The notes beneath the pieces were generated by a model. The model did not search any database and was not told the DNA's origin. It saw nothing but the letters and a program-made list of their open reading frames with translations. From contig NC_086129.1 in assembly GCF_963921235.1 (NCBI RefSeq), positions 31,806,001 through 31,870,000 on the forward strand: DNA of 64,000 bases, written 5' to 3'. The position numbers and the translations under genes were made by a program. This document shows, one piece after another, positions 14,765 to 61,019 of this stretch; within the stretch, counting starts at the first letter, position 1, and every line of letters begins with the position of its first letter. Source of the stretch: Mobula hypostoma. Lineage: Eukaryota.

Positions 14765-15110
14765 AGACGATGGACTGCAGATGCTGGAATTTGGACCAAA
14801 ACCAATTTGCTGGTGGAACTCAGTGGGTCAAGAAGTCACTGTTGGGGGGGGGGGGGGCGGGGGTGTGTAGGAATTGAGTGCAGTCTGAAAGCAATGCAGA
14901 ATGATTTTCATGCAGAATTTACTATATACATTGGAAGTACATACAAAACTCTCTAATTCTTTGATAATACACGCTTCAGTCCTGCCGAAGGGTCTCGGCC
15001 CGAAACATCAACTGTACTTTTTTTCCATAGATGCTGCCTGACCTGCTGAGTTCCGCCAGCATTTTGTATGTGCTACTTGGATTTCCAGCATCTGCAGATT
15101 CTCTCTTGTT
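14765..15110. mobile_element. Two Penelope-derived terminal fragments in opposite orientations
   Basis: ctgcagatgctgga...ggaactcag at 14770-14830 and its reverse complement at 14975-15110. Confidence 0.55.
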
Positions 15111-26601: not shown

Positions 26602-26699
26602 TGAGTCACTCAAGAAAAACACAAGGAACTCTAAATAATTAATGGCTCTCATTAAACAGCCATTAATCAATTCAGGTAGGCAAGGCATTTCAAAACAAT

Positions 26700-39615: not shown

Positions 39616-39621
39616 TTTATT
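39616..39621 (-). terminator. Candidate AATAAA polyadenylation signal of the IgSF gene
   Basis: AATAAA on the minus strand about 300 nt after the stop codon; motif only. Confidence 0.3.
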
Positions 39622-39920: not shown

Positions 39921-40020
39921 TCAGAATTCAGAGGTCATTATTCTGTCCTCTTGATTATCAACGTCTTCATAGGTGTCATCTTTAATCCATTGACGTTGGT
40001 TCTTGAGTTGTTTTGTATTC
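39921..40020 (-). CDS. IgSF receptor terminal coding exon (cytoplasmic tail with TYEDV)
   Basis: Acceptor ttctttctcattAG. Phase-2 frame reads NTKQLKNQRQWIKDDTYEDVDNQEDRIMTSEF, then TGA at 39923-39921. Confidence 0.65.
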
Positions 40021-40564
40021 CTAATGAGAAAGAAGATCAACAAAGCAATGAAGAATGATTTCCATAATTCTTCTGTAATGCTCATTTAGGAACCACTGAG
40101 GAAGTCCAGAGCAAGCATATAATTTAAATTATCATCTCAGCTTCTTCCTCAACACATAATGACTGATATCATTATTCTGCCCAATTCATAAACTTTGGGT
40201 TATTCACCAATGATTGGCGCCAATTCTGCTCAGAGTTCAATGAGGTTTCAAATATAAAGGTGACAAATGTGTGACAATATCTGAAAACAAGATATTGTAA
40301 GATTATGCTCGCTGAAAAAGTTGGTTAACTATTTGATCAGGTTTTAGTGGTAGGTCATCAATGTAAATTAAATGTTTCTGTTTCAACAGCTGTGGCTGAC
40401 CTCTAATATTCCCAGTTTTTTTATATTTACATTTCAGTTTTCCAATATCTTGGATAGTTTGTTTTTGTAACCATTATTGTTCTGTGATTTACTTACCAAA
40501 TAGTTAGGTTACTAAAAGCTGAGTGGCCTGTCATCTGATGAGAATGATATGGATGATGATGATG

Positions 40565-40770
40565 TAAGAAACTGCCAATGTTGGAATCTGGAGCAACACG
40601 CAGGGTGTTAGGGGAATGTAGCAGATCAAGCAGAATTTATGGAGGGAATTAGAGACTCAACATTTTGGGTTTAGAGCCTGAATGAAGGGGTTTGACCCAA
40701 AATATTAACTCTCCATTTCCTTCCATAGATGCTGCCTGACCCATTGAGTTCCTCCAGCATGATATGAACG
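40565..40770 (-). mobile_element. Penelope-derived terminal fragment(s)
   Basis: Similar to 9024-9330, including ccatagatgctgcctgacc...gagttcctccagc. Confidence 0.55.
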
Positions 40771-40929
40771 TTGCTAGTTTGGAACAAGATAATTGTTTCT
40801 TATATCTGTGTTTTTTACTGTGCCCTCCAAAATTGTTTTCACTAGATTATTTCTCAGATCAGTGGATGTGTCCATGAGAGTCAGTACTATGGACCACTGC
40901 ACTTTTTTAATGTAAAAATGAATGCCTTG

Positions 40930-41760
40930 GACTTGGGTCCACAGGGCACAGTTTCCAAATCAGTAATTGATACAAAATTTGGAGATGTTGAGAATTGTGG
41001 CAATGATAGTCATAGACCTCAGGGAGGTATAGGTGAGCTGGTGGAATGTGTGCTCAGTATGGCTACTGAACTTTAATGCAGTCAAAAATGATGTGCTACA
41101 TTTTAGTAAAGAGCAAGGAAAAGTGATTAAAAATTCCTAAAGATGTGTGTGATAGGAGAGCTTTGGTAGTATGCACATCGACCATTGAAAAAAGTCATGG
41201 TGAACCTTGATAAAACTCTTAGTCACATGTGTAGCCTTCTGTCCACTACCAGACACCATTCAGAAGGAAATATATGAAGTCTTTCAGGCGAGAGTAAGAG
41301 ATTAGAGCAAAGTGTTTCTATGAACGAGTGACTTTGTGTGATGAGACTGGAGAAGCTGGTTCTTTTTCTTTGACAAGTGGAGATCACAGTGTAGAATAGT
41401 GGGTGGGAGAGGAACACAGATTAGAAGCCATTAAAGATAGACAAAAGTAGATGGAGAGAAAATGTCCTGGGAGGAGAAAAGCCAAGAACTAGAGGACACA
41501 TAATGAAGATGGCTGGCTCAAGTTCCAAAAGTGACATGAGTGAAAAATACTTTTAAGCAGAAAATGGTTGGGAACTGGAACACATGGCTGGGACAGAAGT
41601 GAGTGGTGGTGGTGAAGATACTATAGTGAGATCTCATGGTGTTGAAAAGGGAACTGGATAAATCCATGAAAATAAAAAAAAAATTGCAGGATAGTTTGAA
41701 GAGGGCGAGTGATTGCAGCTAACTGGATTGTTCTTCCACACAATTGACACAGACTCAAGT
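40930..41760 (+). mobile_element. Highly degraded CR1
   Basis: Remnant KF.DDTK region and 3' UTR-like sequence. Confidence 0.55.
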
Positions 41761-42084
41761 AAATTTAATGGCCTTTATCCTTGTTGTAACCTTTCTTTAG
41801 AGACTAGAGTCTAATCTCTGGAATAATTCTTTCCAGAGGCATCTTGGAATCTATTTAGGACACTCCTTCTTTTCACCTGCAACACAATGGGAAGACCTGC
41901 AGTCAACCTTCCGAGATACTGGAGCGACACTGATGAGCTTTACTGCTTCCATTTTATCATTCTGCTTACCTGGCATGTGTCACTGGCCACTTTATCCTCA
42001 GCTTACCCTCGACTGTCTCAGAGAGACTGGCTGGGCTCATACATACATGCATCACAGAAAGTTAAATGTAGGTACAGCATTTAT

Positions 42085-42397
42085 TTATTTTGTTTAATTT
42101 ATTTAGTGATACAGCATGGAGTAGACCCTTCCAGCTCTTCGAACCACACCACCCCAGCAACCCTAACAAATCTGATTAACCCTAACCTAATCAGGGGACA
42201 ATTTATAATGAACAATTAACCTACCTGGTACGTCTTTGGACTGTGGGTGGAAATCAGTGCACCTGGATGAAAACCCAAGCATTCCATGGGGAAGGATACA
42301 GAGACTCCTTACAGAAAGGCACCAGGATTGAACTCCAAACCCCAGAAATCCAGAGCTGTATTACCGACAAGCTGACTGCTACTCTGTCGTGGTGCCC
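42085..42397 (-). mobile_element. tRNA-derived V-SINE (HE1-like)
   Basis: Minus strand: GGGCACCACG...GAGTTCAATCC head, V-domain-like CCCACAGTCCAAAGACGTACCAGGTAGG, CR1-like tail. Confidence 0.75.
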
Positions 42398-42479
42398 CTT
42401 AGGACCTGCCTGTAAGTTGCCATTTATTGCAACAAAATTTGAGTGAAAAACAGATACATTTGGAATATTAGTTTTCAAA

Positions 42480-42900
42480 TCCTAGAACGGATATACTTGT
42501 AATGAAGAGAGTGCAGTTGATTCCTGGAATGGTGAAATTGTCATTTGAAGATAGATGAAGCAGATTGGAACTGTGCTTATTATATTATAGATGATACATT
42601 GTGATTTCATTCAAAATTCATATCAGAATGTGAGGTTAATATTTCCCATAGCCTGGGTATTCAGAACTAAGGATCTCATTCGCAGAATGGAGACTTGGCC
42701 TTTCTGTGATGAGAAGGTATTTCTTCATTCCAAAGACAGATTCTTTGGAATCTCAGTATATTCAAGACAAAGATGGATAGTATTTTGGATAATAGGAGGA
42801 TAAAGGTATATAGGGTTAGCGCAGGATTTGGAACTGAGTTAGAAGTTCAGTCATAATCTTATCAAAGAGATGAGGAAGCACAAGTGGTGAACGGCTATTT
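42480..42900 (+). mobile_element. Degraded CR1 3' fragment
   Basis: Remnants of the CR1 C-terminal coding region and tail. Confidence 0.5.
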
Positions 42901-43344
42901 CCTGTTTCAAATCCTGATGTTCTTTATGAGCAGCTTGGATGTGACTGTTTGCAACTTTGGCATGCAATCTGAATTCCATCTTCTATGCATTATAAAGATT
43001 ACAAAATGTTTGACTTGTTAACTGCACCTGCCTCTGTGGACTTTACTCCATAGTCTGACAAATCTTTAATCTAAACCTTCCTTAATTCCAGTCTGAACTG
43101 ATGCCGTGCCCTCCGGCTGGTGTCACTAGGCTTCCCTCTCCTGTGGTTTATCCAAGCCCTGCTGTCGAACGTTAAAGTACATTAGTCATTCAGAGTCTGA
43201 GTTTAGAAATTCCTCAGCTCAACACTGCAGTCACTAAAGGCTGTGAACTGTTCCTCATGTGCTTATTATCTAATGCATAATATCAGCGATAATTGTTTCT
43301 GTTCCATGTGTATGCAAAGGGTAATGGGCTATTTTGGGACTTAC

Positions 43345-43369
43345 CTCCTATTGCACAAGAAGTATCGAT
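43345..43369 (-). CDS. IgSF receptor 25-nt cytoplasmic micro-exon
   Basis: Acceptor ttttttatttcacAG, donor GTaagt. Phase 1 in, phase 2 out; encodes (D)RYFLCNR(R) and puts the next exon into its tyrosine-motif frame. Confidence 0.65.
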
Positions 43370-44314
43370 CTGTGAAATAAAAAAGAATTGTACGCTATTA
43401 CGAAAATTCTGTAACGCAACTCTTATTATGTGGAATCTGGCAGTAACTTCATAAAAATACAGATTTTCATCTCATGGAACACTCATTGATGCTAATGCTT
43501 GATGCATTTTGTTTACATTGTAACAACACCGCCCCAGAATGCTTGGTCTCCACAATCCTGCCAACTGTTGCTATTTTATTACTGATTTTTTAACATGAGA
43601 ATTCATTTTACAGAATGCTTTATCCATCAGTGTGGTTCAATAACGAAGGAGAAAATTTTACATGAGGGTGAGAAATTAGGCTTAATTTCACCTGAGATAT
43701 TTTTTAGGCATTTGTCTTTGTCACAGGATCTACATATTCCAGATGGCATATATTTATTATATACATTAATATTATCTATTGTTTCCTGGAGAGGTTACTG
43801 AAATGTGATATTAACCATAATGTAACATTTATATGCTAGCATGCCTTTCCAAGTTACTGCTTGTCAATTTCTATCCACTCTTGAAACCCCCTATACCCCT
43901 TCAAGATGACTTGATGATATACTTTAGTTTTCTCAGTCAACTTTTCCTACTGCATTTAAAAATAAACCTATGGTGTACAGCATTTTTGAAATTAATGTTT
44001 AACTTTACTATCAACTTTTCAAGTTATCATTTGATTTGATTCAACAATTCTATAGTGAATAGAATGCTCACCCACCAATTTGACGTCCCTGACCTTTCAG
44101 TTACTGCGTCCTGCAACTATTCTACACAAGTGTCATAATGGTGTTGACCATCACTTCCTATAATCGACCATTGAAGAAATACATTATCATATAGGTTTGG
44201 TGCCTTGAGTTATTTTATCCATCCAAATTCACCTACATAAATACATACTCACATCAGGTGATGAGCATTAATGCCTATTGAAACTTCCACTTCATATTTG
44301 TTCTTTCATCATTT

Positions 44315-44725
44315 AAGACCATAAGACCATAATGTAAAGGAGCAGAATTAGGCCATTTGGCCCATCAAGCCTGCTCCGCCATTTCACCATGGCTGATTCA
44401 TTTCCCTCTCAGCCCCAATCTCCTGCCTTCTCCCCGTATTCCTTCATGCCCTGATCAGTCAAGAATCTATCAGCCTCTGCCTTAAATATACCCAATGACT
44501 TGGCCTCTGCAGCTGCCTGTGGCAATGAATTCCATAGATTCACCACTCTCCGGCGAAAGGAATTCCTCCCCATCTTTGTTCTAAATGCCTGTACCTGTAT
44601 TCTGCGGCTGTGGTCTCTTTGACTCCCCCACCATTGGAAATATCCTCCCTGCATCCACTCTATCAATGCCTTTCAACATTCAATAGCTTTCAATGAGATC
44701 CCTCTCAATCTTCTGAATTCCAGTA
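44315..44725 (-). mobile_element. CR1 3' fragment
   Basis: VVNLWNSLPQ motif; (CTTATGGT)n tail. Confidence 0.8.
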
Positions 44726-44729
44726 AGTA

Positions 44730-45395
44730 GAAGAGGGAGGAGAAGATGGCGGCGTGACGCAGCGTGCGCGGCCGTTCCAAATTGATATCGATTCGTGTTA
44801 ACTAGGGGGCCGTGCACAATCCTGATTTGATGGAGACAGCTATGAGAAACGTGGAGGAACATCTGGAGAAACTTCTGAAATGCCTGCTTCGCTGCTGCTG
44901 CTACTGTGCGATCGAGATTCTCCGGAGGGGAAGGCCCCAAATCCTCGGCTTTGCGTATTGCCTGTTGCCGGGGCCGGGTTCGAAGCGCTCGGCAGAGATG
45001 GTGCTCGGTGCTCGGTGTCGGAGAGCTGGTTGGAGGCTTGGAGTTTTCGGATGGACTCAGAGTCGGACTGTGGTCGGATACTTCCAGTATGCTGCACCGG
45101 CAAGTTTGCAGCACTGGAGGTTCACTGTCTGCGTGAGATGATGGGACTTTCGAGAGACTTTGAGACTTTTACCATGCCCATGGTCTGTTCTTATCAAATT
45201 ACAGTATTGCTTTGCACTGTTGTAACTATATGTTATAATGATATGGTTTTTGTCAGTTTTTCAGTCTTGGTTTGTCATGTGTTTCTGTGATATCATTCTG
45301 GAAAAACATTGTATCATTTCTTAATGCATGCATTCCTAAATGACAATAAAAGAGGACTGTGTGTCCTCATAATCTAATCTAATCTAAATCTATCT
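44730..45395 (+). mobile_element. Unclassified AAGATGGC-head/(TAATC)n-tail repeat, copy 2
   Basis: Colinear with 20907-21537; its tail ends about 5-8 nt from the TM-exon splice donor. Confidence 0.8.
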
Positions 45396-45402
45396 AATTT
45401 AC

Positions 45403-45480
45403 CTTTATTGCTCCAGAGCAGTAACAAAACGACAGTCATCACAAAGATTGGCACCGTTACAAATCGGTGAGTGAAATATC
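45403..45480 (-). CDS. IgSF receptor exon: transmembrane segment
   Basis: Acceptor ttttttctttctgctacacAG, donor GTaaat, 78 nt, phase 1-1. Encodes YFTHRFVTVPIFVMTVVLLLLWSNK. Confidence 0.8.
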
Positions 45481-46514
45481 CTGTGTAGCAGAAAGAAAAA
45501 AATGTTTGGAATTGGAATTTCAATTGGATTTGGTTTATTATTACTGAAGTACAGTGCATACTGCTCATACAGATCATTATCTACTTCAATATCTAAGAAT
45601 GCTGACAAATATTAGATAAATCGCCTTCCTGGTATAGTAACTCATATACTGACTCAGCATCTTGGTAATATTATAAATCGTAAATTCTTTCGCATTTTCT
45701 CATTTAAGCTGTTGTGGATTTTCCAAGCTATTGTACAAGGTAGGAACTACCAGCCCATATTTCAACAAATTACAATGTCTTAGAAATGTGATATTAGTAC
45801 TTCGGCTCCCTAGACTATTCTAAATAGTAATATAGATAAAATTATATTTTACCAATTGCTAATTTAATTATGTAATTTGAAGAAATTATATATTTTTAAG
45901 ATGCTTTATATCACTTACTCTTGTCTCATGTAGTACAATCATTTGATGTGGAGGTTTGTCTTTTTTTATTTTGGGACAGAGGTTCCTGGGCCAGTTTTGA
46001 TCCAGAAATTTCTGCCATTTCTGGTTCCTGGTGTTGCAGTAATGTCAAACATCCTGTGATTATTTGACACTACTCATGGGAGTTTCTTCCATGCTCTCGA
46101 GGCCCGTAAAAACACTGAAGCATATCTTAATCGGAGACCTCCTTTGGGGTTAGTTTTAAGGCTTGTCCATCCATAGGACGTCACTGCAGAGTCCAACAGT
46201 CCACTTCTGCGAGGTTTGTGTCATATTTAACTGTTCTTTATAATGATTAGCCCCGTGCTAAATTCCCAAGCCACACCACAATCTACTTCGCTATCTCCAG
46301 CAAACATCTGACTTGTACATATCTTTCCTGCCTCATTATTAGCCCCATACCCAAACATATGTCTGACCTCATCATCCCATTCATTTACCCAAACATGCTG
46401 ATTATCTGCCCAACACAACCGTGCTAATCCTTCTCGGTTATTTGCCTGCACCTCCCAGATAATCTGCTCAGCGATTTGATAATCAGTCCCACCCCTAGTC
46501 CAACAAACTGCTCC

Positions 46515-47985
46515 ATCTACGGGAATGTCTACGGGAATGGTACTGGAGGATTGGTGGGAGGCGAATGTTGTCCCCTTGTTCAAAAAAGGTAGTAGGGATA
46601 TTCCGGGTAATTATAGACCAGTGAGCCTTACGTCTGTGGTGGGAAAGCTGTTGGAAAAGATTCTTAGAGATAGGATCTCTGGGCATTTAGAGAATCATGG
46701 TCTGATCAGGGACAGTCAGCATGGCTTTGTGAACGGCAGATCGTGTCTAACAAGCCTGATAGAGTTCTTTGAGGAGGTGACCAGGCATATAGTTAAGGGC
46801 AGTGCAGTGGATGTGATCTATATGGATTTTAGTAAGGCATTTGACAAGGTTCCACACGGTAGGCTTATTCAGAAAGTCAGAAGGCATGGGATTCAGGGAA
46901 GTTTGGCCAGGTAGATTCAGAATTGGCTTGCCTGCAGAAGGCAGAGGGTCGTGGTGGAGGGAGTACATTCGGATTGGAGGGTTGTGACTAGTGGTGTCCC
47001 ACAAGGATCGGTTCTGGGACCTCTACTTTTCGTGATTTTTATTAATGACCTGGATGTGGGGGTAGAAGGGTGGGTTGGCAAGTTTGCAGACGACACAAAG
47101 GTTGGTGGTGTTGTAGATAGTGTAGGGGATTGTCGAAGATTGCAGAGAGACATTGATAGGATGCAGAAGTGGGCTGAGAAGTGGCAGATGGAGTTCAACC
47201 CGGAGAAGTGTGAGGTGGTACACTTTGGAAGGACAAACTCCAAGGCAGAGTACAAAGCAAATGGCAGGATATTTGGTAGTGTGGAGGAGCAGAGGGATCT
47301 GGGGGTACATGTCTACGGATCCCTGAAAGTTGCCTCACAGGTGGATAGGGTAGTTAAGAAAGCTTATGGGGTGTTAGCTTTCATAAGCCGAGGGATAGTG
47401 TTTAAGAGTCGCAATGTAATGATGCAGCTCCATAAAACTCTGGTTCGGCCGCACTTGGAGTATTGTGTCCAGTTCTGGTCGCCTCACTATAGGAAGGATG
47501 TGGAAGCATTGGAAAGGGTACAGAGGAGATTTACCAGGATGCTGCCTGGTTTAGAGAGTATGGATTATGATCAGAGATTAAGGGAGCTAGGGCTTTACTC
47601 TTTGGAGAGAAGGAGGATGAGAGGAGACATGATAGAGGTGTACAAGATATTAAGAGGAATAGATAGAGTGGACAGCCAGTGCCTCTTCCCCAGGGCACCA
47701 CTGCTCAATACAAGAGGACATGGCTTTAAGGTAAGGGGTGGGAAGTTCAAGGGGGATATTAGAGGAAGATTTTTTACTCAGAGAGTGGTTGGTGCGTGGA
47801 ATGCACTGCCTGAGTCAGTGGTGGAGGCAGATACACTAGTGAAATTTAAGAGACTACTAGATGGGTATATGGAGGAATTTAAGGTGGGAGGTTATATGGG
47901 AGGCAGTGTTTGAGGGTCGGAACAACATTGTGGGCCGAAGGGCCTGTACTGTGCTGTACTATTCTATATTCTATGTTCTCTATCC
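46515..47985 (+). mobile_element. CR1 LINE, 5'-truncated RT (one in-frame stop between 46525-46914 and 46951-47913)
   Basis: NYRPVSLTSVVGK, GVPQGSVLGP, KFADDTK; (TATTC)n-like tail. Confidence 0.92.
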
Positions 47986-48213
47986 TGGCTACCTCCTCCA
48001 GTCATTGCTCTGCTCTTCCTGCTCCTACAATACTTTCCCATGGTCCTTTGCAATCTCTATCGCATTTGAGCATGGGTTTATATGTTATCAAACCTCTCCC
48101 ATTTAGGAGCTGCTGGGACCAAGCTTGGTGCCGGATCCAGATTCCATGTGCTTATGCTCTATGAATTAATAAAGCAGAAAAAAATAGACTTTGGGTGGTA
48201 TAATGGTACTTAC

Positions 48214-48534
48214 TTTTCCAAGCGGATATCACATATATTGCCAGAGGATATTCTTTTGAACCAAATGCATTGAATGCTCTGCAAATGTACTTTCCACTGT
48301 AGAAATCATCAGTATTCTCGTTTAGTAAAACTGAGTTGCCTACTCCATTGGCTAATTGTATCCTTTCAGTATGCGCCCCTGATTTCATCCAGATGACTGT
48401 GGATACTGGATTACTGTCCGCGGTGCATTTTAGTTCAAGATATGATTGGGGTTCAATGTAGATAATGTCCTCGAGCAGTGGCTGGAAGTGATCCAAAATA
48501 GAATTTCTGTAATATATGACTGGTTGTGGACCAT
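48214..48534 (-). CDS. IgSF receptor exon: C2/I-set domain
   Basis: Acceptor after a pyrimidine tract (ttttttcccttttccattgttctggttgAG), donor GTaagt, 321 nt, phase 1-1. Splicing gives an LNVNYGP linker; motifs LKCTADSNP, VIW, DDFYSGKYICRAFNAFG. Confidence 0.9.
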
Positions 48535-49614
48535 CTCAACCAGAACAATGGAAAAGGGAAAAAATGTGAGTTACAAAGGCCGTTTCAACAAAACCTTACA
48601 GAATTGCATATGGCGAGTTAGAGACAGAATATAACTGACAGGAAATTGAAGCAGCAACTTCTGATACATTTTTAACTTAGATGTTTATCCAAGGGACAAA
48701 ATTGAAAAGAAAAGATTGCTCTGGGCAATTGTATTTCATAATTGCAATTATGAACGTAGAGATTTATAAAATGGAATTCAATTTACTAATATGTACTCCA
48801 AAAAAAAAACCCACCAAGAATCTTTTCCCTTGAGAGCAGAGAACAGCAGTTTGATTTAATATCTGTGTTTTCTTCCTCTCTTACTGTAGTGATATCTCTC
48901 TTGATCACCTTGTATGATAAGTTATATACAAAGTCATACATGTTAATATATTCAATTATCTAGAGACACTTCAAATTAGTAAATCTTTATATATATATAT
49001 ATAAAGATTTACCAATATATTTAAATGGGAAATAGTTCAATGAATCAGGTTCTATATGGTAGTTTTACAAGATTTCCTTTCAGAAACACATCTAATACAC
49101 TTGCTCAATATCCCTACCAAAATTCTTTTCATTTTATTTACACTCAAACTTCAGAAATAGTCCACTATAACCCCATTGTGTTTTTGTCTCATTTTTAACC
49201 TGTTATTATAAGTAGATTTTGTAGATTCAGAAGCAATATTTTGATTTATAATAATGAATTATATTATAAAATCTTGCAACTTGAGTTCATTTGGCCAGTT
49301 GAACCAGTGCTGCCACTTTGAAAGAGAAATACATTGTGGTCCCGGTTTCTGGTTATTAGCTGCAAGTTAGTCCATCCACATATTAATTACCATTTTTAAA
49401 AGTTCTTCTGTTTTATTTTATTGTCAAAACACTCCCTGTCTTAACAAGCTTAACTACTTATTTTAAAACTGTGGCATTTAACTCCATGACCAGATCATAT
49501 CTTATAATGTAGAAAGGGACCATTGGATTGATTTGGTCCATCTCATTCCCCCTCTCCTTACTTCCAAGTAGCCCTGAAGCAATCTGGGCTTTATACTTCT
49601 TAAAGAAAAATATC

Positions 49615-51030
49615 TTTAATGCTGTAGGCTTTATAAAGCACGATTGAGGCCTCACTTGGAGTATTGTGAGCAGTTTTGGGCCTCTTTTCTTAGAAAGGAT
49701 GTGCTGAAACTTGGCGAAGGTTCAAAGGAGGTTCACAAGAATGATTCCAGGATTGAATAGCTTGTCACATGAAGAGTGTTTGATGGCTTTGGGCCTGTAT
49801 TGACTGGATTTCAGAAGAATGAGGGGGGACCTCATTGAAGCCTATTGAATGGTGAAAGGCCTTGATAGAGTGGATGTGGAGAGGATGTTTCCTATCGTGG
49901 GAGAGTCTAAGACCAGAGGATACAGCCTCAGAAGAATAGAGGGGTGTCCTTTCAGAATGGAGATGAGGAAGAATTTCTTTAGCCAGAGGGTGGTGAACCT
50001 GTGGAATTCTTTGCCACAGGCAACTGTGGAAGCTAAGTCTTCATGTATATTTAAGGCAAGGGTTGATAGATTCTTGAAAAATGGATCAACCATGATGAAA
50101 TGGTGGAGCAAACTTGATGGGCCAAATGGCCTAATTCTGCTCCTTTATCTTATGGTCCTATGGTCTATGGTTAAGTCTATCCTAAATATCATCATGCCTG
50201 TTCCTACATTGTGTTTCTTACTTTTACTTTTTATGACACAAAACTGTTTTGTGAAAGTTCCTTACTCATCTAGGCAAAGAAACTTTTATTGAGAAAAAAA
50301 GATTAACAATGTAATGCAAGCATTGCACCTTAGTAGGGCAAATGCAAGAAGACAGCACACTGTTATGGGCAAGATCCTTAACCGTGTTGCGGAGCAGAGA
50401 GATTTTGGGATCCAAGTTCATATCTCCATGAAAGTGGCTACCCAGTTTGATAGATAGGATGATTAAGAAGGCTGATGGAATGCTTGCTTTTATGAGTCGA
50501 AGCAATGAGTTCAAAAATCAAGGGTTATATTGCAACATTATAGAACTCGGGTTAGGACACATCTGGAGAATTGCATACTGTTCAGTTTGCCCCATTATAG
50601 GAAGGATGTTGAGGCTTTGGAGAGGGTGCAGAAGAGGTTTACCAGGATGCTGCCTGGTTTAGAGGACATGTGCTATCATAAGAGGCTGGACAAACTTGGG
50701 GTATTTTCTTTAGAGTGGTGAAGGCTGAGGAGAGATCTGATAGAGCTTTATAAGATTATGAGAAGCATAGATAGAGTGCATAGGGAGTATCTTTTTCCCA
50801 GGGTTAAAACTTCCAATACCAGAGGGCATGCATTGAAGGTGAGAGAAATGAGGTTCAAAGGGAATGTGCGGAGAGTAATGGATGCCTGGAACGCGCTGCC
50901 TGGCATGATGGTAGAGACAAATACATTAGATGCTTTTAAGAGACGTTTAGATATGCACATGAATGTGAAAAAGATGGAGGGATATGGACATTGTGTAGGT
51001 AGGAGCAGTTAGTCATTGAGGGTTATTGAT
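49615..51030 (+). mobile_element. Two tandem CR1 3' fragments (about 49615-50165 and 50290-51030)
   Basis: VVNLWNSLPQ and ALERVQKRFTRMLPGL motifs. Confidence 0.8.
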
Positions 51031-51194
51031 TTTTTTTTGAGAATTCAAGGTGAAAGGACAGTTTGCTAAATTGACATTACCTACTAATTTAAAAAGTGAA
51101 ATGATATATTTAGCACCCAACTTACCTCAGTTAGAAATACTGTATGTTATATCATTTCATACTATGATTAAAACCATAAATTGAACATACTTAC

Positions 51195-51521
51195 AATTGA
51201 CATTAAGTGTTATATTTTTTATGATCCATTGTTTGCTTGTTGTATGAAGAACCTGACAAGTACGGATTGTCTTGTGGTCTTGCGAGGTGGGAGTAAAATT
51301 CATTTGACTGGTGGCATTAAATGTACCATTGAAGTTCTTGAGAGGGGAGAGTCTTGTTGTAACTTTAACATCTGCTTCTGAAGCCTGAGCATTGTGGATA
51401 TGCAGCCATTTCATTGAGATGTTCTGAGGATAAAATCCCCAAGCATGGCAATACAAAGCGGACGGCTTCTCTGCTATTAATTCTTCATGAGTAATTAAAA
51501 TTTCTGGTGGAGATTCTGGAA
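51195..51521 (-). CDS. IgSF receptor exon: C1-set domain
   Basis: Acceptor gtttattacAG, donor GTaagt, 327 nt, phase 1-1. Motifs LYCHAWGFYPQNISMKW, NGTFNATSQM and CQVLH are the C1-set signature; ends NITLNVN. Confidence 0.92.
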
Positions 51522-52204
51522 CTGTAATAAACAATGCAAGATAAAAATATATTGTTCTTTAGTGCTAAATAAAACTTAGTTTATATCACATTTCTATTTC
51601 AATAAGTGTGAATCATAAATATAATCTTAGCTGATGACAGGACCTGTGCAAGCAGACTTACATAGAACACTTTCCCATGAGTATTATAGTTGCTAATTTG
51701 GAAGAATTTGTCAAATTTTGCATGACCCAATATTATTTTCAGTATTGCCAGTGGATTTGATTTCCTTAAATCCAGATTCAGTTCATATGCGTCACCTTCA
51801 ATTGTGTCATGGAATTCTGTTCTTGTGATGGATGTGCATTTATCTGGATTATCTATTTATATTCAGTGCTTCCTTTTGATTTATATCCCTGTTTTGCGAT
51901 GCCAGCAGAATGCTTAAAAAGAGTTTAAAAGGAACAACGCAAACAGTGAGTGAAAGCAGGCAGTTGATTTAAACTAATGGCTGGAAAATAAAAAATGTTG
52001 CTTGCAGATTACCAAAACTGTGAGAAATCCGGTAGGATTTTAAGTATCGTCTTTTTATTAGTTGAATTAACATAGTCTTTTGAGGCATTAGGGCACCTTA
52101 AATGAGTGGAATGCATATTGTGCACCGTGTAAGAATCCCAGGGTGCATCCTGTATCCTGGGCAGTAAAAGCATTAGGAAATGATAGTTGGAGAAGCTCAC
52201 ACTC

Positions 52205-53335
52205 CTGGGTTTTGAACTGAAGCTGGTAAGATGGCAGCATACTCGGCCACAGCGGCCTCTCCGAGTCCAAAACAAAGGTGTAATTGTTTGTTCTTTATGT
52301 CTATTTTATGACTGCAAGACACTGCTGGATATTAAGAATATCAAGCACGGCAGGTTTACCCCATCAGCGAGTCACTCAATGGCGGTGAAGCTGGACCTGT
52401 TGTGTCTTTCCATGCTCTTGAGGACAGGCCCGGGCTCCACCTCAACTTTGCCTTGCCTCTACTCGCCTCGACTCTTCCTCAGCTCTGCCTCCCCTCCACT
52501 TGCCTCGACTCTGCCTCGTGCTCACTCACCTCAACTCTGCTGACAGTGGAAGAATTGTACTTGGCAGAAATGGAACAGTTAATGACAATGAGTGCAACAC
52601 CAAATTAATTTCAGTTATGGTTTTCATACCTGATTTGTAATTCTTTACATTAAATGAAAACCAATAAACATTCAGATGCTGGGATTCTGAATTGAAACAG
52701 AAAATGTTGGAAACACTCAGCAGATCAGGAGAATCTGTGGAGAGAGAGACATTAACTCTGACCTGCTGAGTGTTTCTATCTTTTTTGTTTTTTTTTTGTG
52801 ATCCTGGTGGCCTGGAGTTGGGATGCAAGCCCCATGATTAACTCCATTGCTTTTGTCTGAGTGAGGCGTCAAGCAATGTTAAGGGCAATGAGGACAGGAG
52901 CAGAGGATGGGCAGGTGTTCAGCACCATGTGCCTGCACTTGACTAGGCTGCTGTCGGAGGAACTGCAGGAGTCCTGGGGTCTATGTTGCCCAGATTTAGC
53001 GACAAGGCTGTAGACTAATTTTGGGGGACTTTGGGGTTCATGTTGCACGTGTTCCTGGGTTCAGGTTGCTCTTTTTTTGTGTCGTCCTTGAGCAGTTTGA
53101 TCGGGGTGATCAATGCAGAATGGGGCACTTTGGTGAAGAATGACCTTGTGGCCTGCATTAGCTAGCAGGGCAGTGCTGAACTGAACTGTTTTGATATTCT
53201 ATGTGGAGTTCACTCGCTTTTCGCCATTTGCACAACTTCTTTGCACATTGGGTGCTTGATGTTTTCTTGAACGTGTTCCATTCTGTTTCTTTGTTTTATG
53301 GCTGCCTGTGGGAGGACGAATCTCAGAGTTGTGTT
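52205..53335 (+). mobile_element. Composite repeat region: AAGATGGC-headed segment, (CTCGACTCTGC)-like repeats, Penelope fragment and Rex-like tail
   Basis: Pieces resemble other repeats in the window; family not assigned. Confidence 0.4.
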
Positions 53336-53339
53336 CTTT

Positions 53340-54595
53340 ATACTTTATTCTTTATTGTCACCAAACAATTGATACTAGAACGTACAATCATCACAGCGAT
53401 ATTTGATTCTGTGCTTCCCACTCCCTGGATTACAAATCAATAATAAATATTAAAAATTTAAATTATAAATCATGAATAGAAACTAGAAAAATGGAAAGTA
53501 AGGTAGTGCAAAAAAACAAGATGCAGGTCCGGATATTTGGAGGGTACAGCCCAGATCCGGGTCAGGATCCGTTCAGCAGGCTTATCACAGTTGGAAAGAA
53601 GCTGTTCCCAAGTCTGGCGGTACGAGTCTTCAAGCTCCTGAGCCTTCTCCCGGAGGGAAGAGGGACACAAAGTGTGTTGGCTGGGTGGGTCGTGTCTTTG
53701 ATTATCCTGGCAGCACTGCTCTGACAGCGTGTGGTGTGGAGTGAGTCCAAGGACGGAAGATTGGTTTGATTGGTTTGATAGACAGGTAGATAGATAGATA
53801 GATAGATAGATATACTTTATTAATCCCGAGGGAAATTTGGTAATGTGTGATGTGCTGTGCCGTGTTCACGATCTTCTGCAGCTTCTTCCGGTCTTGGACA
53901 GGACAACTTCCATACCAGATTGTGATGCACCCTAGAAGAATGCTTTCTACAGTGTATCTATAAAAATTAGTGAGGGTTTTAGGGGACAGGCCAAATTTCT
54001 TTAGTTTTCTCAGGAAGTAAAGGCACTGGTAGGCCTTCTTGGCAGTGGACTCTGCTTGGTTGGACCAAGTCAGGTCATATGTGATATTGACCAAGGAACT
54101 TAAAGGTTTTGACCTGTTCCACTTGCGCACCACGAATGTAAATTGGGTTGTGCGGTCCACTACTCCTTCTGAACTCAACAACCAATTCCTTCGTCTTGCT
54201 GATGTTGAGGGATAGGTTATTGTCTTCGCACTATGCCACCAGGTTCTTAATTTCCTCTCTGTACTCAAACTCATCATTACCCGAGATATGGCCTACAATT
54301 GTCATCAGCAAACTTATATATTGAGTTCGATGGAAACTTGGCTACACAATCATGGGTGTACAGTGAGTACAGCAGGGGGCTGAGTACACAGCCTTGTGGG
54401 GCACCGGTGCTCAGAGTGATTGTAGAGGAGAGCTTGTCCCCTATTTTTACAGCCTGGGTCCTGTCTGTGAGGAAGTTGAAGATCCAGCTGCAGATCTGAG
54501 TGCTAAGGCCCAGGTTCTGGAGCTTAGGAATCAGTTTATTTGGAATGATGGTATTAAAGGCAGAGCTGTAGTCAATGAAAAGGAGTTCTGTATCC
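53340..54595 (-). mobile_element. Rex/Babar-like RT fragment containing a (GATA)n microsatellite
   Basis: [39 protein letters not shown]. Confidence 0.88.
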
Positions 54596-54799
54596 ATACT
54601 TTGATAATAAATGTATTTTGAATCTTGAATCTATGTAACAACATATCAAAGACACCATTTGGCAAATGTTCTATAAACACCAATATTGATATACCTCTTA
54701 TTGTACTGAATTGAAACATGATTTACTTAATTAGCCAGATTTCCCATTGGATATTTTTGTTATCAGTGCGTGTTTGTGTTTCCGAATGGGATTTGGTAC

Positions 54800-55725
54800 A
54801 TAAATAGAGACATAGAGTAATTTAGCAGGCTATTGAATCTTTATCCTCTCACCTTAAACCCATATTCTCTGGTCTTGATTTCCCAACCTTGGGAAAAAGA
54901 GTGAATGCATTATTAATATTAGTTCCTATCTCATGATTACATGCACATCTACAAGGTCATCTCTAGCCCCTCCTATGCTCCAGGGGAAAAAGTTCTAGCC
55001 TGTCAATCTCTCCCTATGACTCAGTCCCTCATGTCCTGGCAACATCATTGTAAATCTTTTCTACACTCTTTCTAGTTTAATAACATCTTTCCTATAGCAG
55101 AATGAGCAAAACTGAACACGATACTCCACTAGCATCTTGTAAACTTTACCATAACTTCCCAGCGTCCATACCTGTGACTCTGCTTTCAGGAAACCATGTA
55201 CTTGAACATCAAGGTCCCTCTGTTCTACAACACTCACAGATGTTCTACCGTTTACTATGAGAGGCCTACCATGAATTGACTTTCCAAAATGCAACATCTT
55301 ACATTTATCTGAATTAAACTCTATTTGCTGTTTCTTGGCCCACTTATCTTGCTGATCAAGAGCCCCATGCAATTACTATTAACATTTTTCCCTGTCAGTG
55401 ATTCCACTTATTTTCATGCCATCTGAAAATTTACTAACCATGCTTTTTTCCAAATTATTAATATAGATGACAAACTACAATAGGCCCAGCACTGACCACT
55501 GACCCCTGACCCCGATTAGTTACGGGCCTCCAGTGTGAGAAACAACCTTCCATCATTACCCTCGGCTTCCTACCACCACAATCAATTGTGTGATTGTGTG
55601 TCCAATTAGCCAGCTCTTCCTGGATTCCATGTGATCTAATATCCCAGAGTAGTCTGTCATGTAGAACCTTATCAACGGCTTTACTGAAGTCCATACTTCT
55701 AATGCCTTGTCATCATTGACATTCT
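54800..55725 (-). mobile_element. Degenerate CR1
   Basis: MDFSKAVDKVLH and KCKMLHFG motifs. Confidence 0.75.
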
Positions 55726-55739
55726 TGGTCAAGAAAACT

Positions 55740-57440
55740 CCTTGCTGATGATCAACATTGGCACACCTCAGGGATGTGTTCTTAGCCCACTGCTCTGCTC
55801 TCTCTATACTCAAGACTGTGTGTTAAGTATAGCTCAAATGCCATCTATAAATGATACGTCCATTGTTGGCAGACTCAGATGGAGACGAGAGGGCGTACAG
55901 GAACAAGATATACCAGCTAGTTGAGTGGTGTCACAGCAACAACCTTTCACTCAATGTCAATAAGACGAAAGAACTAATTATGGACTTCTGAAAGGGTAGG
56001 ATGAGGGAACATCATTGAGGGATCAGAAGTGGAGAGACTGAGCAATTTCAAGTTCCTGGGTGTCAAGATCTCTGAGGATCTGACATGGTCCCAACATATC
56101 AATGCAAAAAAGGATCTAATGCTTATGTATGTATATGTTGATGCAGCTATAAAGAAGGCAAGACAGCAGCTATATTTCATTAGGACTTTGAGGAGATTTG
56201 GTTTGTCACCTACAACACTTGAAAACTTCTACAGAGGTACCGTGGAGAGCATTCTGACTGTCTGCATCACATGGGAGGTGGTGGGGGGAGGAGGGCTACT
56301 GTCAGGATCAAAAACAGCTACAGAAATCTGTAAAATTGGTCAGCTCCATCTTGGGTACTAGCCTCTGTAGTATCCAAGACATTTTCAGGAGCAGTGCTTT
56401 GGAAAGATGCCATCATTATTAAGGACTCCCATCAGCCAGGACATGCCCTTTTCTCATTGTTACTGTTGGGAAGGAGGTACAGAAGCCTGAAGGCACACAC
56501 TCATCAATTCAGGAACAGCTTTTGCCATCTGATTCCTAAATGGACATTGAACCCATGAACACTACCTAATTTTTAAAATTACTTCTGTTTTTGCACTATC
56601 TTTAATTTAACTATTTAATATACATATATGCACGTACTGTAATTGATTTACTTATTTATTTTTTCTTTCTATATCATCACGTATTGCATTGTACTGCTGC
56701 CATTAAGATAGATTAGATTGTGAGGACACTCAGTCCTCGTTTATTGTCATTTAGAAATGCATGCATTAAAAAATGATACAACGTTCCTCCAGAATGATAT
56801 CACAAGAAAACACAGGACAAACCAAGACTAAAACTGACAAAATCACATAATTATAACATATAGTTACAACAGTGCAAAGCAATACCATAATTTGATAAAG
56901 AGCAGACCACAGGCACGGTAAAAAAAAAGTCTCAAGGTCCCGATAGCCTCATCATTCCACGCAGGCGGCAGAAGGGAGAAACTCTCCCTGCCATGAACCT
57001 CCAAGCGCCGCCAACTTGCCGATGCAGCACCATTGGAAGCACCCGACCGCAGCGGACTCTGAGTCTGTCCGAAAACTTCGAGCCTCCGACCAGCCCCTCC
57101 GACACAGCCTCTCCGAGCACCATCCTCTATCGAGTGCTTTGGCCCCGCCCCTGCTGCCAAGCAACAAGCAAAGCCAAGGACTTGGGTCTTCTCCTCCAGT
57201 GATTCTGGACCACACAGTAGCAGCAGCAGCGAAGCAGGCATTTCAGAAGTTTCACCAGATGTTCCTCCGTGCTCTCACGTCCGTCTCCATCAAATCAGGA
57301 TTGTGCATGGCACCCTACTTGACAAATAACAGACGTCACCACCGGAGTGGTCGCTGTGAGCTGCGTCGCGCCGCCATCTTCTCCAACACCTTCTTAACCA
57401 GTTTTATGACATGTGCCAGTGATATTAAACCTGATTCAGA
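55740..57440 (+). mobile_element. Rex/Babar-like fragment whose tail is split by repeat copy 3
   Basis: [22 protein letters not shown]; tail joins across 56707/57395. Confidence 0.8.
56708..57392 (-). mobile_element. Unclassified AAGATGGC-head/(TAATC)n-tail repeat, copy 3
   Basis: Reverse complement of the family at 20907 and 44730. Confidence 0.8.
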
Positions 57441-57454
57441 CTCATAAGAAATAA

Positions 57455-58000
57455 TCTCCCATACGCAGAGCCATGCTGACTATCCCTAATCAACCCATGT
57501 CTTTCCATATGCATGCATATCTTATCCCTCAGAATTCTCTCCAATAACTTACCAACAATGTCAGAATTACTGGTCTATAGTTCCCTGGTTTTTCTTTGCA
57601 GTCATTCTTAAATAAAGGCACAATATTTGCTTATCCCTAGTCTTCCAGCACCTCACCCACGGCTAAAGACTGTGCAAATATTTCAGCCAAGACCTTCACA
57701 ATTTCTTCTCTAGCATCCCACAGTGTTTTAGGATATAACTTTTAAGACGTCCAGCATCCTCTCTACAGTAATATGGACTATCCTCAAGACACCCCCATTC
57801 ACATCCCTTCTTTCCCATATAGTCATGATACTTTCCATGGCAAAAATAGAGAAGAAATTTTCATTCCTGCCTTTCTCCTAAGTCTTCACACAAGCTGCAC
57901 ATTTTGATCTTTGAGGGGCCCTATTCTGTCTCTATTCTTTGTTTCTCTTAAGGTACATAAAATCTTATTGGATTATCTTTAATCCTGCCAAACCTATCTT
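57455..58000 (-). mobile_element. Degenerate CR1 fragment (RT N-terminal region)
   Basis: Reverse complement resembles the NYRP region of CR1 at 23185-24861. Confidence 0.6.
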
Positions 58001-58039
58001 ATGTCATATTAACTGTAATTAATATGCATACATTTCTAC

Positions 58040-58810
58040 AGATGTACTATGAAGAGTGTTCTGATTAGTTGTATCTGGTATGGATGCTCCAATGCACAGG
58101 ATGAAAAGAGGGTTGTAGACTCAGCCAGCTCCATCATAGGCACCAGCCTCCCCACCATCGAGGGCATCTTCAAAAGCTGGTGCCTCAGAAAGGCAGCATC
58201 CATCATAAAGGACCCTTACCATCCAGAACACATCTTCCTCTCATTATCAGCATCAGAGAAGAGATACAGGAACCTGAAAACACACACTCAACATTTTAAG
58301 CCGGCTGTTTTCCCTCAACCATCAGATTTCTGAACAGTCCATGAACCCACCTCACTATTCCTCTATTGCACTATTTATTTATTTAAAATTTTACTTTAAC
58401 TTATATTATATTATGTGTTGGCATATGGCCAAGTGGTTAAGGCGTTCGTCTAGTGATCTGAAGGTCGCTAGTTCGAGCCTCAGCTGAGGCAGCATGTTGT
58501 GTCCTTGAGCAAGGCACTTAACCACTCCGACGACACCAGTGCCAAGCTGTATCGGCCCTAGTGCCCTTCCCTTGGACAATATTGGTGGCGTGGAGAGGGG
58601 AGACTTGCAGCATGGGCAACTGCTGGTCTTCCATACAACCTTGCCCAGGCCTGTGCCCTGGAAACCTTGCAAGGTGCAAATCCATGGTCTCATGAGACTA
58701 ATGGATGCCTATTTATACTTATTATTTTTGTGTCTTGCACTATACTGCTGCCACAGCACAACAAATTTCACTACATATGTCAGTGATAATAAACCTGATT
58801 CTGATACTGA
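58040..58810 (+). mobile_element. Rex/Babar-like 3' fragment split by a SINE
   Basis: CLRKAASIIKDPYHPEH motif; the tail resumes after the SINE. Confidence 0.75.
58420..58712 (+). mobile_element. tRNA-derived SINE with CORE-like central domain
   Basis: Box A TGGCCAAGTGG, box B AGTTCGAGCC, then GTGTCCTTGAGCAAGGCACTTAACC. Confidence 0.8.
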
Positions 58811-58857
58811 TACACATTGCAGAAACTATACTTGTAGAATGACAAAAAAAAGTTTAC

Positions 58858-59205
58858 CATAAACCTGCAGCAGTGTTCCTTGGCCTTTTGCCTCTAATGG
58901 TGGGTAGACACTGGGTATCCTCAGGATACAGGTGTAGCGATTACCAGAGTGATCAAAGGAGACATGTTCAACCCTCAGTGATGCATTACAGCGTTTCAAT
59001 CCATGCAGACAGGCGTCAGGGACACAATGCAGATTATTCACTTTGTAAGGAACATCTCCAGCCCTTGGTGATGTCCTGTGCCAGGAAATGATGACCCAGC
59101 CATCCTCAGTTGCATTATGAGTAAAGCTGCAGTTTAACGTGACTGACTCCCCTCTCCAGACACTGACGAGACGCGGCTGGTTCACCTCCAAGACCACTGG
59201 AACCC
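58858..59205 (-). CDS. IgSF receptor exon: V-set domain with germline-joined J-like motif (NKp30/SIRP-like VJ)
   Basis: Acceptor tttcccatcAG, donor GTaaac, 348 nt, phase 1-1. Translation VPVVLEVNQPRLVSVWRGESVTLNCSF...ISW...ASLRVEHVSFDHSGNRYTCILRIPSVYPPLEAKGQGTLLQVY has the B-strand Cys, C-strand Trp, YxC and GxGTxLxV motifs. Confidence 0.93.
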
Positions 59206-59704
59206 CTGATGGGAAAGAAGTAAAGCTTGTCAGATTCAGTCAGACTTCAGTTGATAGTTTGATATAAGTTCACTTTCAACAATGCTAACTTGGAAAACGA
59301 AAACAGAATGCTGAAAAAATCAGTGATTAAGCAACATCTCTGGAGACAAAAGGTATCATTCACTATGTCAGGTTGAGATCCTACATCAAGACTGAGGGGG
59401 AACAGTTTATATCAGTACAGAGTGGGGTGGCATAGAGACATATCATGGTGGAACTAGATGGGGACAGGATGATAGGCAGCTGGAACCAGATGTGGGAGGG
59501 AGCAGGAACAGAGGCTGTAGGTGATAGTTGGAGAAAAATGGGGAGGGGATGATGGAGATATAGAACCAGGTGGGTAAGGATTGACTGAATTGCTGATTGC
59601 CTTTCTGTTACATGAAATATATCAAAATATGTTTCCTTTTCAGATTTAATTCTAAATTACCCAATGGTTTAGGATTCAATATTCTGTCTGAGTTTATTTC
59701 ATAA

Positions 59705-60940: not shown

Positions 60941-61019
60941 TGAGGTTATTTCAAATGTCCAGACTATAGTAAAGGGATTAGAGTGTTGCCACAGACATCC
61001 TTGGCTGCCATTTAGATGG

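Follow-up and report, generated by a model that had tools for sequence, protein, structure and literature searches.

A Mobula hypostoma gene predicted to encode a non-rearranging VJ-C1-I-set membrane glycoprotein of an unnamed family in sharks, rays, paddlefish and sturgeon

We analyzed a stretch of 64,000 nt of the Mobula hypostoma genome (GCF_963921235.1, NC_086129.1, 31,806,001-31,870,000; hereafter the window, in whose positions all coordinates are given) and found that six exons on its minus strand join into a single open frame of 398 codons that ends with TGA at 39921-39923. Sequence comparison identifies this gene as the ray ortholog within the short-tail lineage of an old, unnamed family that is present in sharks, rays, paddlefish and sturgeon. 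With V and J encoded within one exon, uninterrupted by a recombination signal, and a C1-set exon following next, its sequence places it in the already known broad class of non-rearranging VJ-C1 receptors. The explanation that we consider probable is a short-tail member of this family, i.e. a non-rearranging VJ-C1-I membrane glycoprotein whose V-C1 pair is related to SIRP and whose layout is collinear with CADM, with a proposed non-inhibitory or adhesion role.

Exon structure and domain architecture

A check of the splice borders identified AG acceptors and GT donors flanking all six exons, and each of the three Ig exons is of phase 1-1. The canonical splice sites, the matching phases and the frame of about 400 aa proposed in the earlier note were thus reproduced throughout. 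The features are as follows:

58858..59205, minus strand: V(J) exon (AG/GT borders, frame, Pfam V-set, family alignment, AF2 model)
51195..51521, minus strand: C1-set domain exon (Pfam C1-set, PDB matches, stingray identity, dN/dS)
48214..48534, minus strand: exon of the third Ig domain, I-set/C2 type (Pfam Ig_3 and I-set, PDB profile matches, stingray identity)
45403..45480, minus strand: stalk and transmembrane exon (hydropathy maximum, family alignment)
43345..43369, minus strand: juxtamembrane micro-exon of 25 nt (AG/GT borders, frame, gap-free stingray match)
39921..40020, minus strand: last coding exon with acidic tail and TGA stop (frame, stop, tail comparison)
39616..39621, minus strand: putative AATAAA polyadenylation-type signal about 300 nt past the stop (pattern scan)

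The 3' UTR presumably continues from the last coding exon. All junctions from the C1 exon to the stop, including those of the micro-exon, match the stingray protein model P0039 without a gap (86% identity over 283 aa), while the junction between the V and C1 exons is supported by the sawshark protein model. Neither paralogous Ig exons nor SPA17 were found in the remainder of the window, and scans with Rfam and for tRNAs returned nothing for the window.

The V(J) exon (348 nt; Pfam V-set, E 2.9e-6) codes for the final residues of a split leader and then for a compact V domain with a J motif at its end. The spliced protein retains every hallmark Cys and Trp, among them the canonical V-domain pair Cys25-Cys92 (the latter in a YTC context) and Trp41, which are invariant in the family alignment. 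Additional cysteines are located at positions 60, 65 and 72; of these, Cys60 and Cys72 do not vary within the family, while Cys65 is absent from all ten relatives in the V alignment. The J-like end reads GQGTLLQVY, with G107, G109 and T110 invariant across the family. In the full-length AF2 prediction for the sawshark ortholog, the V domain was of low quality (pLDDT 40-60), so the V exon was modelled alone with a deeper alignment, which resulted in a mean pLDDT of 88.8. The nearest folds of this model were TCR Valpha, Ig VL, VNAR and NKp30. The nearest named relatives of the V domain outside the family were NKp30-named and SIRP-named proteins as well as antigen-receptor V domains, and NCR3-named turtle proteins were among the few significant V-domain matches when 1.84 billion representatives were searched. 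The earlier description of an NKp30/SIRP-like V domain with a germline J motif is therefore well founded.

The second domain was recognized as C1-set by Pfam (E 1.8e-12), as had been claimed, while C2-set_2 reached only E 0.003 on the same domain. Its exon (CHAWGFYPQNISMKW ... RTCQVLH) contains GFYP and five N-glycosylation sequons, and a profile search against PDB returned MR1 alpha3, SIRP d3, B7-H6 and UrIg2 among its matches. The domain is 87% identical to the stingray model. The C1 exon is under moderate purifying selection, with a dN/dS of 0.43-0.50 relative to a Logan genomic contig in which its splice sites are conserved. For the third Ig exon, Pfam matched Ig_3 (E 6e-8), I-set (E 2e-6), Ig_2 and ig but not C1-set. 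This exon carries the LNVN|YGPQP linker, LELKCTADSNPVSTVIW and GKYICRAFN, its PDB profile matches were the I-set and C2 proteins DSCAM, contactin, MAG and CEA, and the domain is 82% identical to the stingray model. Its type was assigned from sequence profiles and from the model of the sawshark ortholog rather than of the ray protein. Pfam, PDB profile searches and predicted structures hence agree with the proposed order of VJ, C1 and C2 domains followed by a transmembrane segment, the third domain being of I-set/C2 type.

The strongest hydrophobic stretch of 19 residues spans residues 338-356 within the stalk and transmembrane exon (FVTVPIFVMTVVLLLLW) and is followed by a 42-residue tail. The helix contains no charged residue, and its VP[IL]FV motif is conserved in rays, sharks and paddlefish. 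The micro-exon encodes DRYFLCNR, including one conserved cysteine, and the last exon encodes an acidic tail with DDTYEDV and a C-terminal TSEF. The corresponding ends are TSEF in stingray, TEF in sawshark and TSEL in cat shark. Two features are kept in sharks and rays alike, the transmembrane helix and a terminal [S/T]-E-[F/L]; the latter agrees with the class I PDZ sequence pattern [S/T]-x-hydrophobic. That C-terminal motif is not family-wide, since the paddlefish and sturgeon relatives stop a few residues past the membrane and lack a PDZ-type end. Of the transmembrane segment and tyrosine-motif tail described previously, the helix was confirmed and the motif is present here, but the tyrosine is not a feature of the family, as it occurs in two rays and is absent from the two sharks with known tails.

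Orthologs and branches of the family

Besides the stingray model, a sawshark model (P0006) shows 52% identity over 401 aa and is collinear from the V domain to the tail, and partial models were detected in three further sharks, namely the epaulette shark and two cat sharks. In a tree of the V and C1 domains, which included two SIRP sequences, the short-tail clade (support 95/93) and a clade of ITIM-bearing proteins (100/98) each contained shark as well as ray sequences. Paddlefish and sturgeon sequences were placed outside both clades, with SIRP and the V-C1 genes of turtles still further out. The ITIM/ITSM motifs VSYADI, TIYAVV and SEYSVV were restricted to the sister lineage. On the basis of this sequence tree, both branches predate the split between sharks and rays.

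The automatic database names of the family members are wrong and mutually inconsistent, including Siglec-10/11/12/13, MAG-like, sialoadhesin-like, syg-2-like and SIRP-like, the latter being given to the paddlefish and sturgeon members. Neither the protein searches nor the literature searched revealed a described family with the same three domains to which the gene would be orthologous over its full length, and no publication on this VJ-C1-I family was found in the same literature. The statement that the gene could not be assigned to a named family consequently stands, although it is not unique, given its collinear database proteins and its kin in paddlefish and sturgeon. SPA17 adjoins the family gene in the latter two, while no neighbouring genes were present within 10 kb in stingray, epaulette shark and cat shark. 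The large databases were searched with the exon sequences and orthologs as queries, and a collection of 5.8 billion proteins contained no protein from the ray genome for the present gene.

Nearest relatives, alternative explanations and the 5' end

The domain order V, C1-like and I/C2 is shared with the nectin/CADM/Necl proteins and CRTAM, and the likeness extends to a linker of the [IL]xVxY-P type after the CxVxH strand and to a short tail with a hydrophobic C-terminus that fits a PDZ ligand. The family profile aligned over its three domains with a single CADM sequence, CADM3 (97%, E 1e-10 and 22% identity over 295 columns), while an IGSF9B-like control matched the V domain and little past it. 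Among the best three-domain matches that Foldseek gave for the sawshark ortholog model were nectin-1, Necl-4, CADM3/4 and PVR. The gene could accordingly encode an adhesion molecule of the nectin/Necl type rather than an immune receptor, with V domains interacting in trans and the tail held on PDZ scaffolds, as for nectins, CADMs and CRTAM; the scaffolds bound by the C-termini of nectins and Necls are afadin or of the MAGUK type. We regard this reading as unlikely but still credible. Identity to CADM and nectins is just 14-22%, and nectin second domains match Pfam C2-set_2, not C1-set, whereas the ray protein has a true C1-set domain with GFYP. Furthermore, nectins and CADMs have neither a J-type V end nor sister genes with ITIMs, while the ray family has both: its V domain carries the J motif and is nearer to those of SIRP, NKp30 and TCR, and the ITIM/ITSM tails of its sister lineage are typical of immune receptors.

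According to the sequence comparisons, SIRP and the V-C1 genes of turtles come closest to the V-C1 pair, and SIRP receptors are the nearest named relatives. In SIRPs, too, the V domain does not rearrange, has a J-type end and precedes a true C1-set domain, the latter supported here by Pfam and by hhalign to SIRP-alpha D2. The family profile aligned by hhalign with V and C1 (D1-D2) of pig SIRP-alpha at 98.4% and E 1e-14 (GFFPQNISLKWF versus GFYPQNISMKWL), with GF[FY]PQNIS[LM]KW[FL] as a common pattern and the J end GQGTLLQVY aligned with GPGTRLFV. ITIM-bearing and short-tail forms exist in both families, the present gene paralleling SIRP-gamma, while none of the family sequences seen was an activating form, in which the transmembrane segment would carry a charged residue. 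A divergent true SIRP ortholog in cartilaginous and basal ray-finned fish, with its third domain replaced, appears improbable. SIRPs were indeed the best named matches of the family profile after the family members themselves (E 3e-42 to 1e-18), and the names of the paddlefish and sturgeon proteins point in the same direction. On the other hand, identity to SIRP is a mere 25-28%, the third domain is I-set instead of the C1-set of SIRP, and equal scores were obtained with turtle V-C1 genes named TAPBPL-like or NCR3-like. Gene location also argues against a SIRP ortholog, as SPA17 adjoins the paddlefish and sturgeon genes, whereas human SPA17 (11q24) and the human SIRP cluster (20p13) differ in location.

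The turtle V-C1 genes, automatically named tapasin-related protein-like (TAPBPL-like) and NCR3-like, share with NKp30 a VJ-type V domain, which in the turtle genes is followed by C1, and aligned with the family over V and C1 at 98.5% (hhalign, E 1.5e-15, 29% identity). In contrast to the three domains of the ray family, these proteins and NKp30 have two domains or one, with neither an I-set domain nor a PDZ-type tail. UrIg comprises three C1-type domains and is known as a secreted form only, while nurse shark UrIg2 carries nine domains of the C1 type together with a membrane anchor (PMC12227049). Both resemble the present gene in that a VJ exon that does not rearrange precedes a C1-type domain, and the C1 profile had UrIg2 as one of its best PDB matches. 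Their domains after VJ are C1-type only and include no I-set; the present gene was rejected as a member because its third domain is I-set and its C1 domain is single. The PRARP genes of chicken (Fu et al. 2019, as cited in PMC10751288) are reported to have the same kind of VJ exon with a C1-type domain behind it.

No start codon or signal peptide is encoded by the six exons. The region 59206-64000 holds transposon copies only, and scanning it for an ATG with a hydrophobic stretch and a phase-1 donor, as well as with the leaders of paralogs, yielded no credible leader exon. The single candidate, 63936-63873, flanks a reverse-transcriptase element of the opposite strand on its 3' side and was rejected. 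The 5' end of the gene is thus either beyond the window or unrecognised. The gene had been called intact, which holds for the open frame and all splice sites but is unproven for the 5' end, because the window contains neither a leader exon nor a start codon. As had also been noted, the introns harbour transposon sequence, their ORFs giving RVT_1 and ALKBH8_N matches, and elsewhere in the window there are matches to RVT_1, Exo_endo_phos_2 and RNase_H.

The missing leader and start codon, the large transposon-filled introns, the lack of a ray protein in the 5.8-billion-protein collection and the extra Cys65 would all suit a decaying, non-functional relic truncated at its 5' end, whose open exons have not yet gathered stops. 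Such a relic is decidedly improbable in view of 398 open codons over six exons, intact splice sites, complete hallmark Cys and Trp residues, a stingray ortholog at 86% identity with no indel and a dN/dS below 1 for the C1 exon. Moreover, a convincing signal peptide was seen in no short-tail model of any species, which suggests a distant, hard-to-find exon rather than loss. From its sequence, the ray gene is apparently real and working.

The automatic Siglec-type names are explained by resemblance to the domains and tails of Siglecs (MAG, CD22 and CD33-related), which share V and C-type domains, a similar third domain and, with the sister lineage, ITIM or ITIM-like tails. A sialic-acid-binding lectin, as these names imply, is nevertheless hardly credible: MAG and CD22 were among the top Foldseek matches of the three-domain model and the third domain resembles Siglec C2 domains, but MAG/CD22 identity is 16-18%, the second domain is C1-set instead of the all-C2-set series that follows V in Siglecs, the V domain combines a J motif with the ordinary B-F disulfide (Cys25-Cys92, with Trp41), and there is no conserved arginine after the F-strand cysteine, since family members have R, V, K, N or Q in the column just after it. 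Siglec V-set domains lack the B-F pair and have an intra-sheet (B-E) disulfide instead, together with one between domains.

Proposed role and evolutionary setting

As a short-tail member of the VJ-C1-I family, the locus would encode an immunoglobulin-superfamily member, namely a type I membrane glycoprotein with an ectodomain of a non-rearranging V domain with germline J end, a true C1-set domain and an I-set domain, followed by the uncharged helix and the 42-residue tail. The tip of the V domain probably binds a ligand, while the C1 and I-set domains may serve as a stalk. Signalling in the manner of SIRP-alpha or SIRP-beta would be impossible, because the predicted protein has neither an ITIM nor a charged transmembrane residue. 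By analogy with SIRP-gamma beside SIRP-alpha, it would most likely be the ITIM lineage's counterpart in a non-inhibitory or adhesion-type role. The conserved helix and the C-terminal [S/T]-E-[F/L], a putative class I PDZ ligand, would hold the protein at the membrane, and the tyrosine of the ray YEDV motif may add SH2 docking.

Non-rearranging VJ-C1 genes are the main comparative material on the gene that was split by the RAG transposon to give rise to antibodies and T-cell receptors. The VJ, C1 and I-set architecture, so far unnamed, is represented here by an inhibitory and a short-tail branch and by kin in paddlefish and sturgeon. Since its V-C1 pair resembles SIRP and its layout resembles nectin-like proteins, the family could help to order these two groups. 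A more speculative and doubtful proposal is that the family is a surviving intermediate between adhesion molecules of the nectin/CADM type and the VJ-C1 of SIRP and antigen receptors. The family would then be older than the divergence of cartilaginous from bony fish, lie beside SPA17 in an immunoglobulin-gene-rich region and have been lost in teleosts and tetrapods. If true, it would be a living example of a VJ-C1 core that arose inside an adhesion-molecule scaffold. The wrong automatic names of its members matter to anyone mining shark and ray genomes.

Structure of the ray gene and its transposon-rich surroundings

The earlier note had read the stretch from 39921 to 59205 as an immunoglobulin-superfamily receptor gene. 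Our analysis confirmed this observation and upheld its interpretation in the essentials: the gene represents, in the ray, an old and unnamed family related to SIRP whose third domain is distinct, and it belongs to the non-ITIM partner lineage described below. Its exons are:

58858-59205, minus strand, V(J) exon
51195-51521, minus strand, C1-set exon
48214-48534, minus strand, third Ig exon
45403-45480, minus strand, stalk/TM exon
43345-43369, minus strand, 25-nt micro-exon
39921-40020, minus strand, tail exon

As the note had claimed, splice borders were canonical (AG acceptor and GT donor around 6/6 intervals) and phases matched, the six exons joining in a single frame of 398 open codons with a TGA stop at 39921-39923. 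All three large Ig exons were phase 1-1, the usual pattern for exons that encode Ig domains. Comparison with Pfam identified the first exon as V-set (E 2.9e-6) and the second as C1-set (E 1.8e-12), while the third matched Ig_3 (E 6e-8) and I-set (E 2e-6) and gave no C1-set match. The top hydrophobic stretch of the protein, FVTVPIFVMTVVLLLLW, lies within residues 338-356 in the fourth exon; this TM stretch contains no charged residues and is followed by a tail of 42 residues. The eight N-glycosylation sequons were confined to the V and C1 domains.

Neither a start codon nor a signal peptide was present in the six exons. The paralogs have a leader exon of about 16 codons that stops one base ahead of the V exon, a junction at the same position as the start of the ray V exon. 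When the remaining 4.8 kb upstream (59206-64000) were searched for similarity to family leaders or for a signal-peptide pattern with a phase-1 donor, only transposon copies and no leader exon were found; the one candidate, at 63936-63873, adjoins a reverse-transcriptase element on the opposite strand and was rejected. The gene can accordingly be called intact only for the part that runs from the V domain through to the stop.

Intron ORFs matched RVT_1 and ALKBH8_N, and ORFs for reverse transcriptase, endonuclease and RNase H were spread over the window, so a gene hidden among TE-filled introns is an accurate description. One unbroken ORF of 558 residues (23185-24861, minus strand; RVT_1 E 3.7e-34) may be a recently active retroelement. 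The ALKBH8_N ORF (53702-54277, minus strand; E 1.2e-11), located in the transposon-rich intron 1, is probably part of a retroelement and not a host gene. A repeat containing a hammerhead-like CTGA...GAAAC core was noted at about 59780-59860 (minus strand), with two related copies at 9028-9154 and 14974-15098; it had no Rfam match at the gathering threshold.

Orthologs and branches of the family

With the ray V exon as query, phmmer was run exhaustively against 1.84 billion representatives and returned just 34 matches at E up to 0.001. All six strong matches (E up to 6e-25) came from sharks and rays, and the few named weak ones were turtle NCR3 and NCR3-like, hamster SIRP and lizard Ig lambda-like proteins. 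A Pristiophorus (sawshark) protein named sialoadhesin-like (P0006) was collinear with the spliced ray product from the V domain to the C-terminal residues, with 52% identity over 401 residues. The Hemitrygon akajei (stingray) protein P0039, named syg-2-like, matched gap-free from C1 to the stop (86% identity, 283 residues), which bears out each of the junctions that follow the V exon, the micro-exon included. In place of the V exon, this model carries a transposon fragment: its first 39 residues were 92% identical to an element in intron 1 of the ray gene (55578-55694, minus strand), so the stingray model starts inside a transposon and lacks the V exon. This element recurs in weaker copies at about 23989-24081, 26699-26785 and 46822-46923. 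Partial short-tail models, named Siglec-10 and Siglec-11, were found in Hemiscyllium and two Scyliorhinus species, while word-index protein searches did not return a protein of the gene from the window's own genome. A short genomic contig assembled from a public sequencing run carried the orthologous C1 exon (67% protein identity, AG and GT sites kept); its dN/dS against the window of 0.43-0.50 indicates moderate purifying selection on this exon, which is common for immune-type receptors.

The tyrosine motif reported for the tail was present in the ray (DDTYEDV) and the stingray (NTYEDV), but sawshark (DRVEDAD) and cat shark (STAEDVD) lack the tyrosine. Sharks and rays share the TM helix (VPIFV...W), a cysteine next to the membrane, a patch of acidic residues (EDxD) and a C-terminal TSEF, TEF or TSEL that, by established motif rules, fits the pattern of a class I PDZ ligand.

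The ITIM lineage comprised members from Rhinoraja, Narcine, Rhincodon, Stegostoma, Heterodontus and Chiloscyllium, with database names such as Siglec-12/13 and MAG-like. The V domain was shared at 45-52% identity, the second domain was degenerate (GLY replaces GFYP), the third was the same as in the ray gene, and the long tails carried VSYADI, TIYAVV and SEYSVV (ITIM/ITSM type). Rhinoraja longicauda (skate) had two such paralogs of 380 and 491 residues in tandem, about 10 kb apart (L001:10001-23700 and from 33382), with V exons 95% identical. Paddlefish and sturgeon encoded a 362-residue protein, named SIRP-like, that shares the three-domain layout and ends in a very short tail (34% identity over 350 residues, E 4e-59). 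In a maximum-likelihood V+C1 tree, the short-tail (support 95/93) and ITIM (100/98) clades each contained sharks and rays, so that their duplication predates the shark-ray split; branching among the short-tail genes followed this split, supporting one-to-one orthology. The paddlefish and sturgeon genes fell outside both clades, with SIRPs and turtle V-C1 genes further out.

Likeness to named families

Beyond its own members, the family profile retrieved mammalian SIRPs first (E 3e-42 to 1e-18, 25-28% identity), then CADM3 (E 8.7e-6). In profile-profile comparisons, V+C1 of pig SIRP-alpha aligned with the family at 98.4% (E 1e-14), with GFFPQNISLKWF opposite GFYPQNISMKWL, and a turtle V-C1 protein named tapasin-related-like at 98.5% (E 1.5e-15). 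CADM3 matched across all three domains (295 columns, 97%, E 1e-10), while an IGSF9B-like control matched the V domain and little beyond. Foldseek hits to the predicted sawshark ortholog model, in which domains 2 and 3 were good and V poor, included MAG, nectin-1, CD22, Necl-4, PVR, RAGE and SIRP-gamma, each at 14-18% identity. In UrIg and UrIg2 the VJ domain is followed by C1-type domains alone, where the ray gene has a C1-set followed by an I-set domain. The automatic Siglec names were rejected given the ordinary B-F disulfide in V, the C1-set second domain and, in the family alignment, an F-strand cysteine not followed by a conserved arginine. A partial search of the literature on UrIg, PRARP, VJ-C1 and cartilaginous-fish SIRP led to papers on UrIg/UrIg2 and shark MHC (PMC12227049, PMC10751288) and found no description of a VJ-C1-I family, though a prior description is possible.

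The family V profile aligned full length, including the J strand, with TCR Valpha and Ig light-chain V (best single-domain E 2e-7). The AF2 model of the ray V exon was confident (mean pLDDT 88.8); its nearest folds were TCR Valpha, Ig VL/VH, shark VNAR, IGSF6 and NKp30, and the highest TM-scores of the model were to LRIG I-set domains. A single modelled strand between C' and E makes this a compact V domain without either C'' or D. Cysteines 60 and 72, invariant in the V alignment (n=11), probably form an extra disulfide; a third extra cysteine, at position 65, occurred in the ray sequence alone (1/11). The C1 domain matched Ig heavy-chain C domains, UrIg2, SIRP d3, MR1 alpha3 and B7-H6, and the third domain DSCAM, contactins, neurofascin, MAG, FcRL5 and CEA.

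The paddlefish and sturgeon neighbourhood

In these fishes the family gene was compact (about 3 kb) and lay about 4 kb upstream of SPA17, a gene identified from the match of exon 1 to solved structures of Sp17 (E 1e-19). Its neighbours in the paddlefish (L002) and sturgeon (L004) loci are:

L002:17563-17748 and L004:16672-16857, SPA17 exon 1, about 4 kb downstream of the family gene
L002:1-2587 (ORF 2060-2341) and L004:1-1096, upstream Ig gene, 491-524 residues, with C2-set_2, C1-set and Ig_3

On the basis of paddlefish and sturgeon, SPA17 may serve as an anchor for tracing the family by synteny; it was absent from the ray window when searched for. The last exon of the upstream Ig gene bears VPYADI, comparable to VSYADI in the ITIM lineage of sharks and rays, which suggests that this neighbour may be a tandem inhibitory (ITIM) partner in paddlefish and sturgeon as well. 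In sturgeon, a 178-residue V-set gene that may encode a CD47-like ligand separates the SIRP-like family gene from its ITIM-type neighbour (L004:2926-7519, Ig exon 6406-6621; weak V-set_CD47 match).
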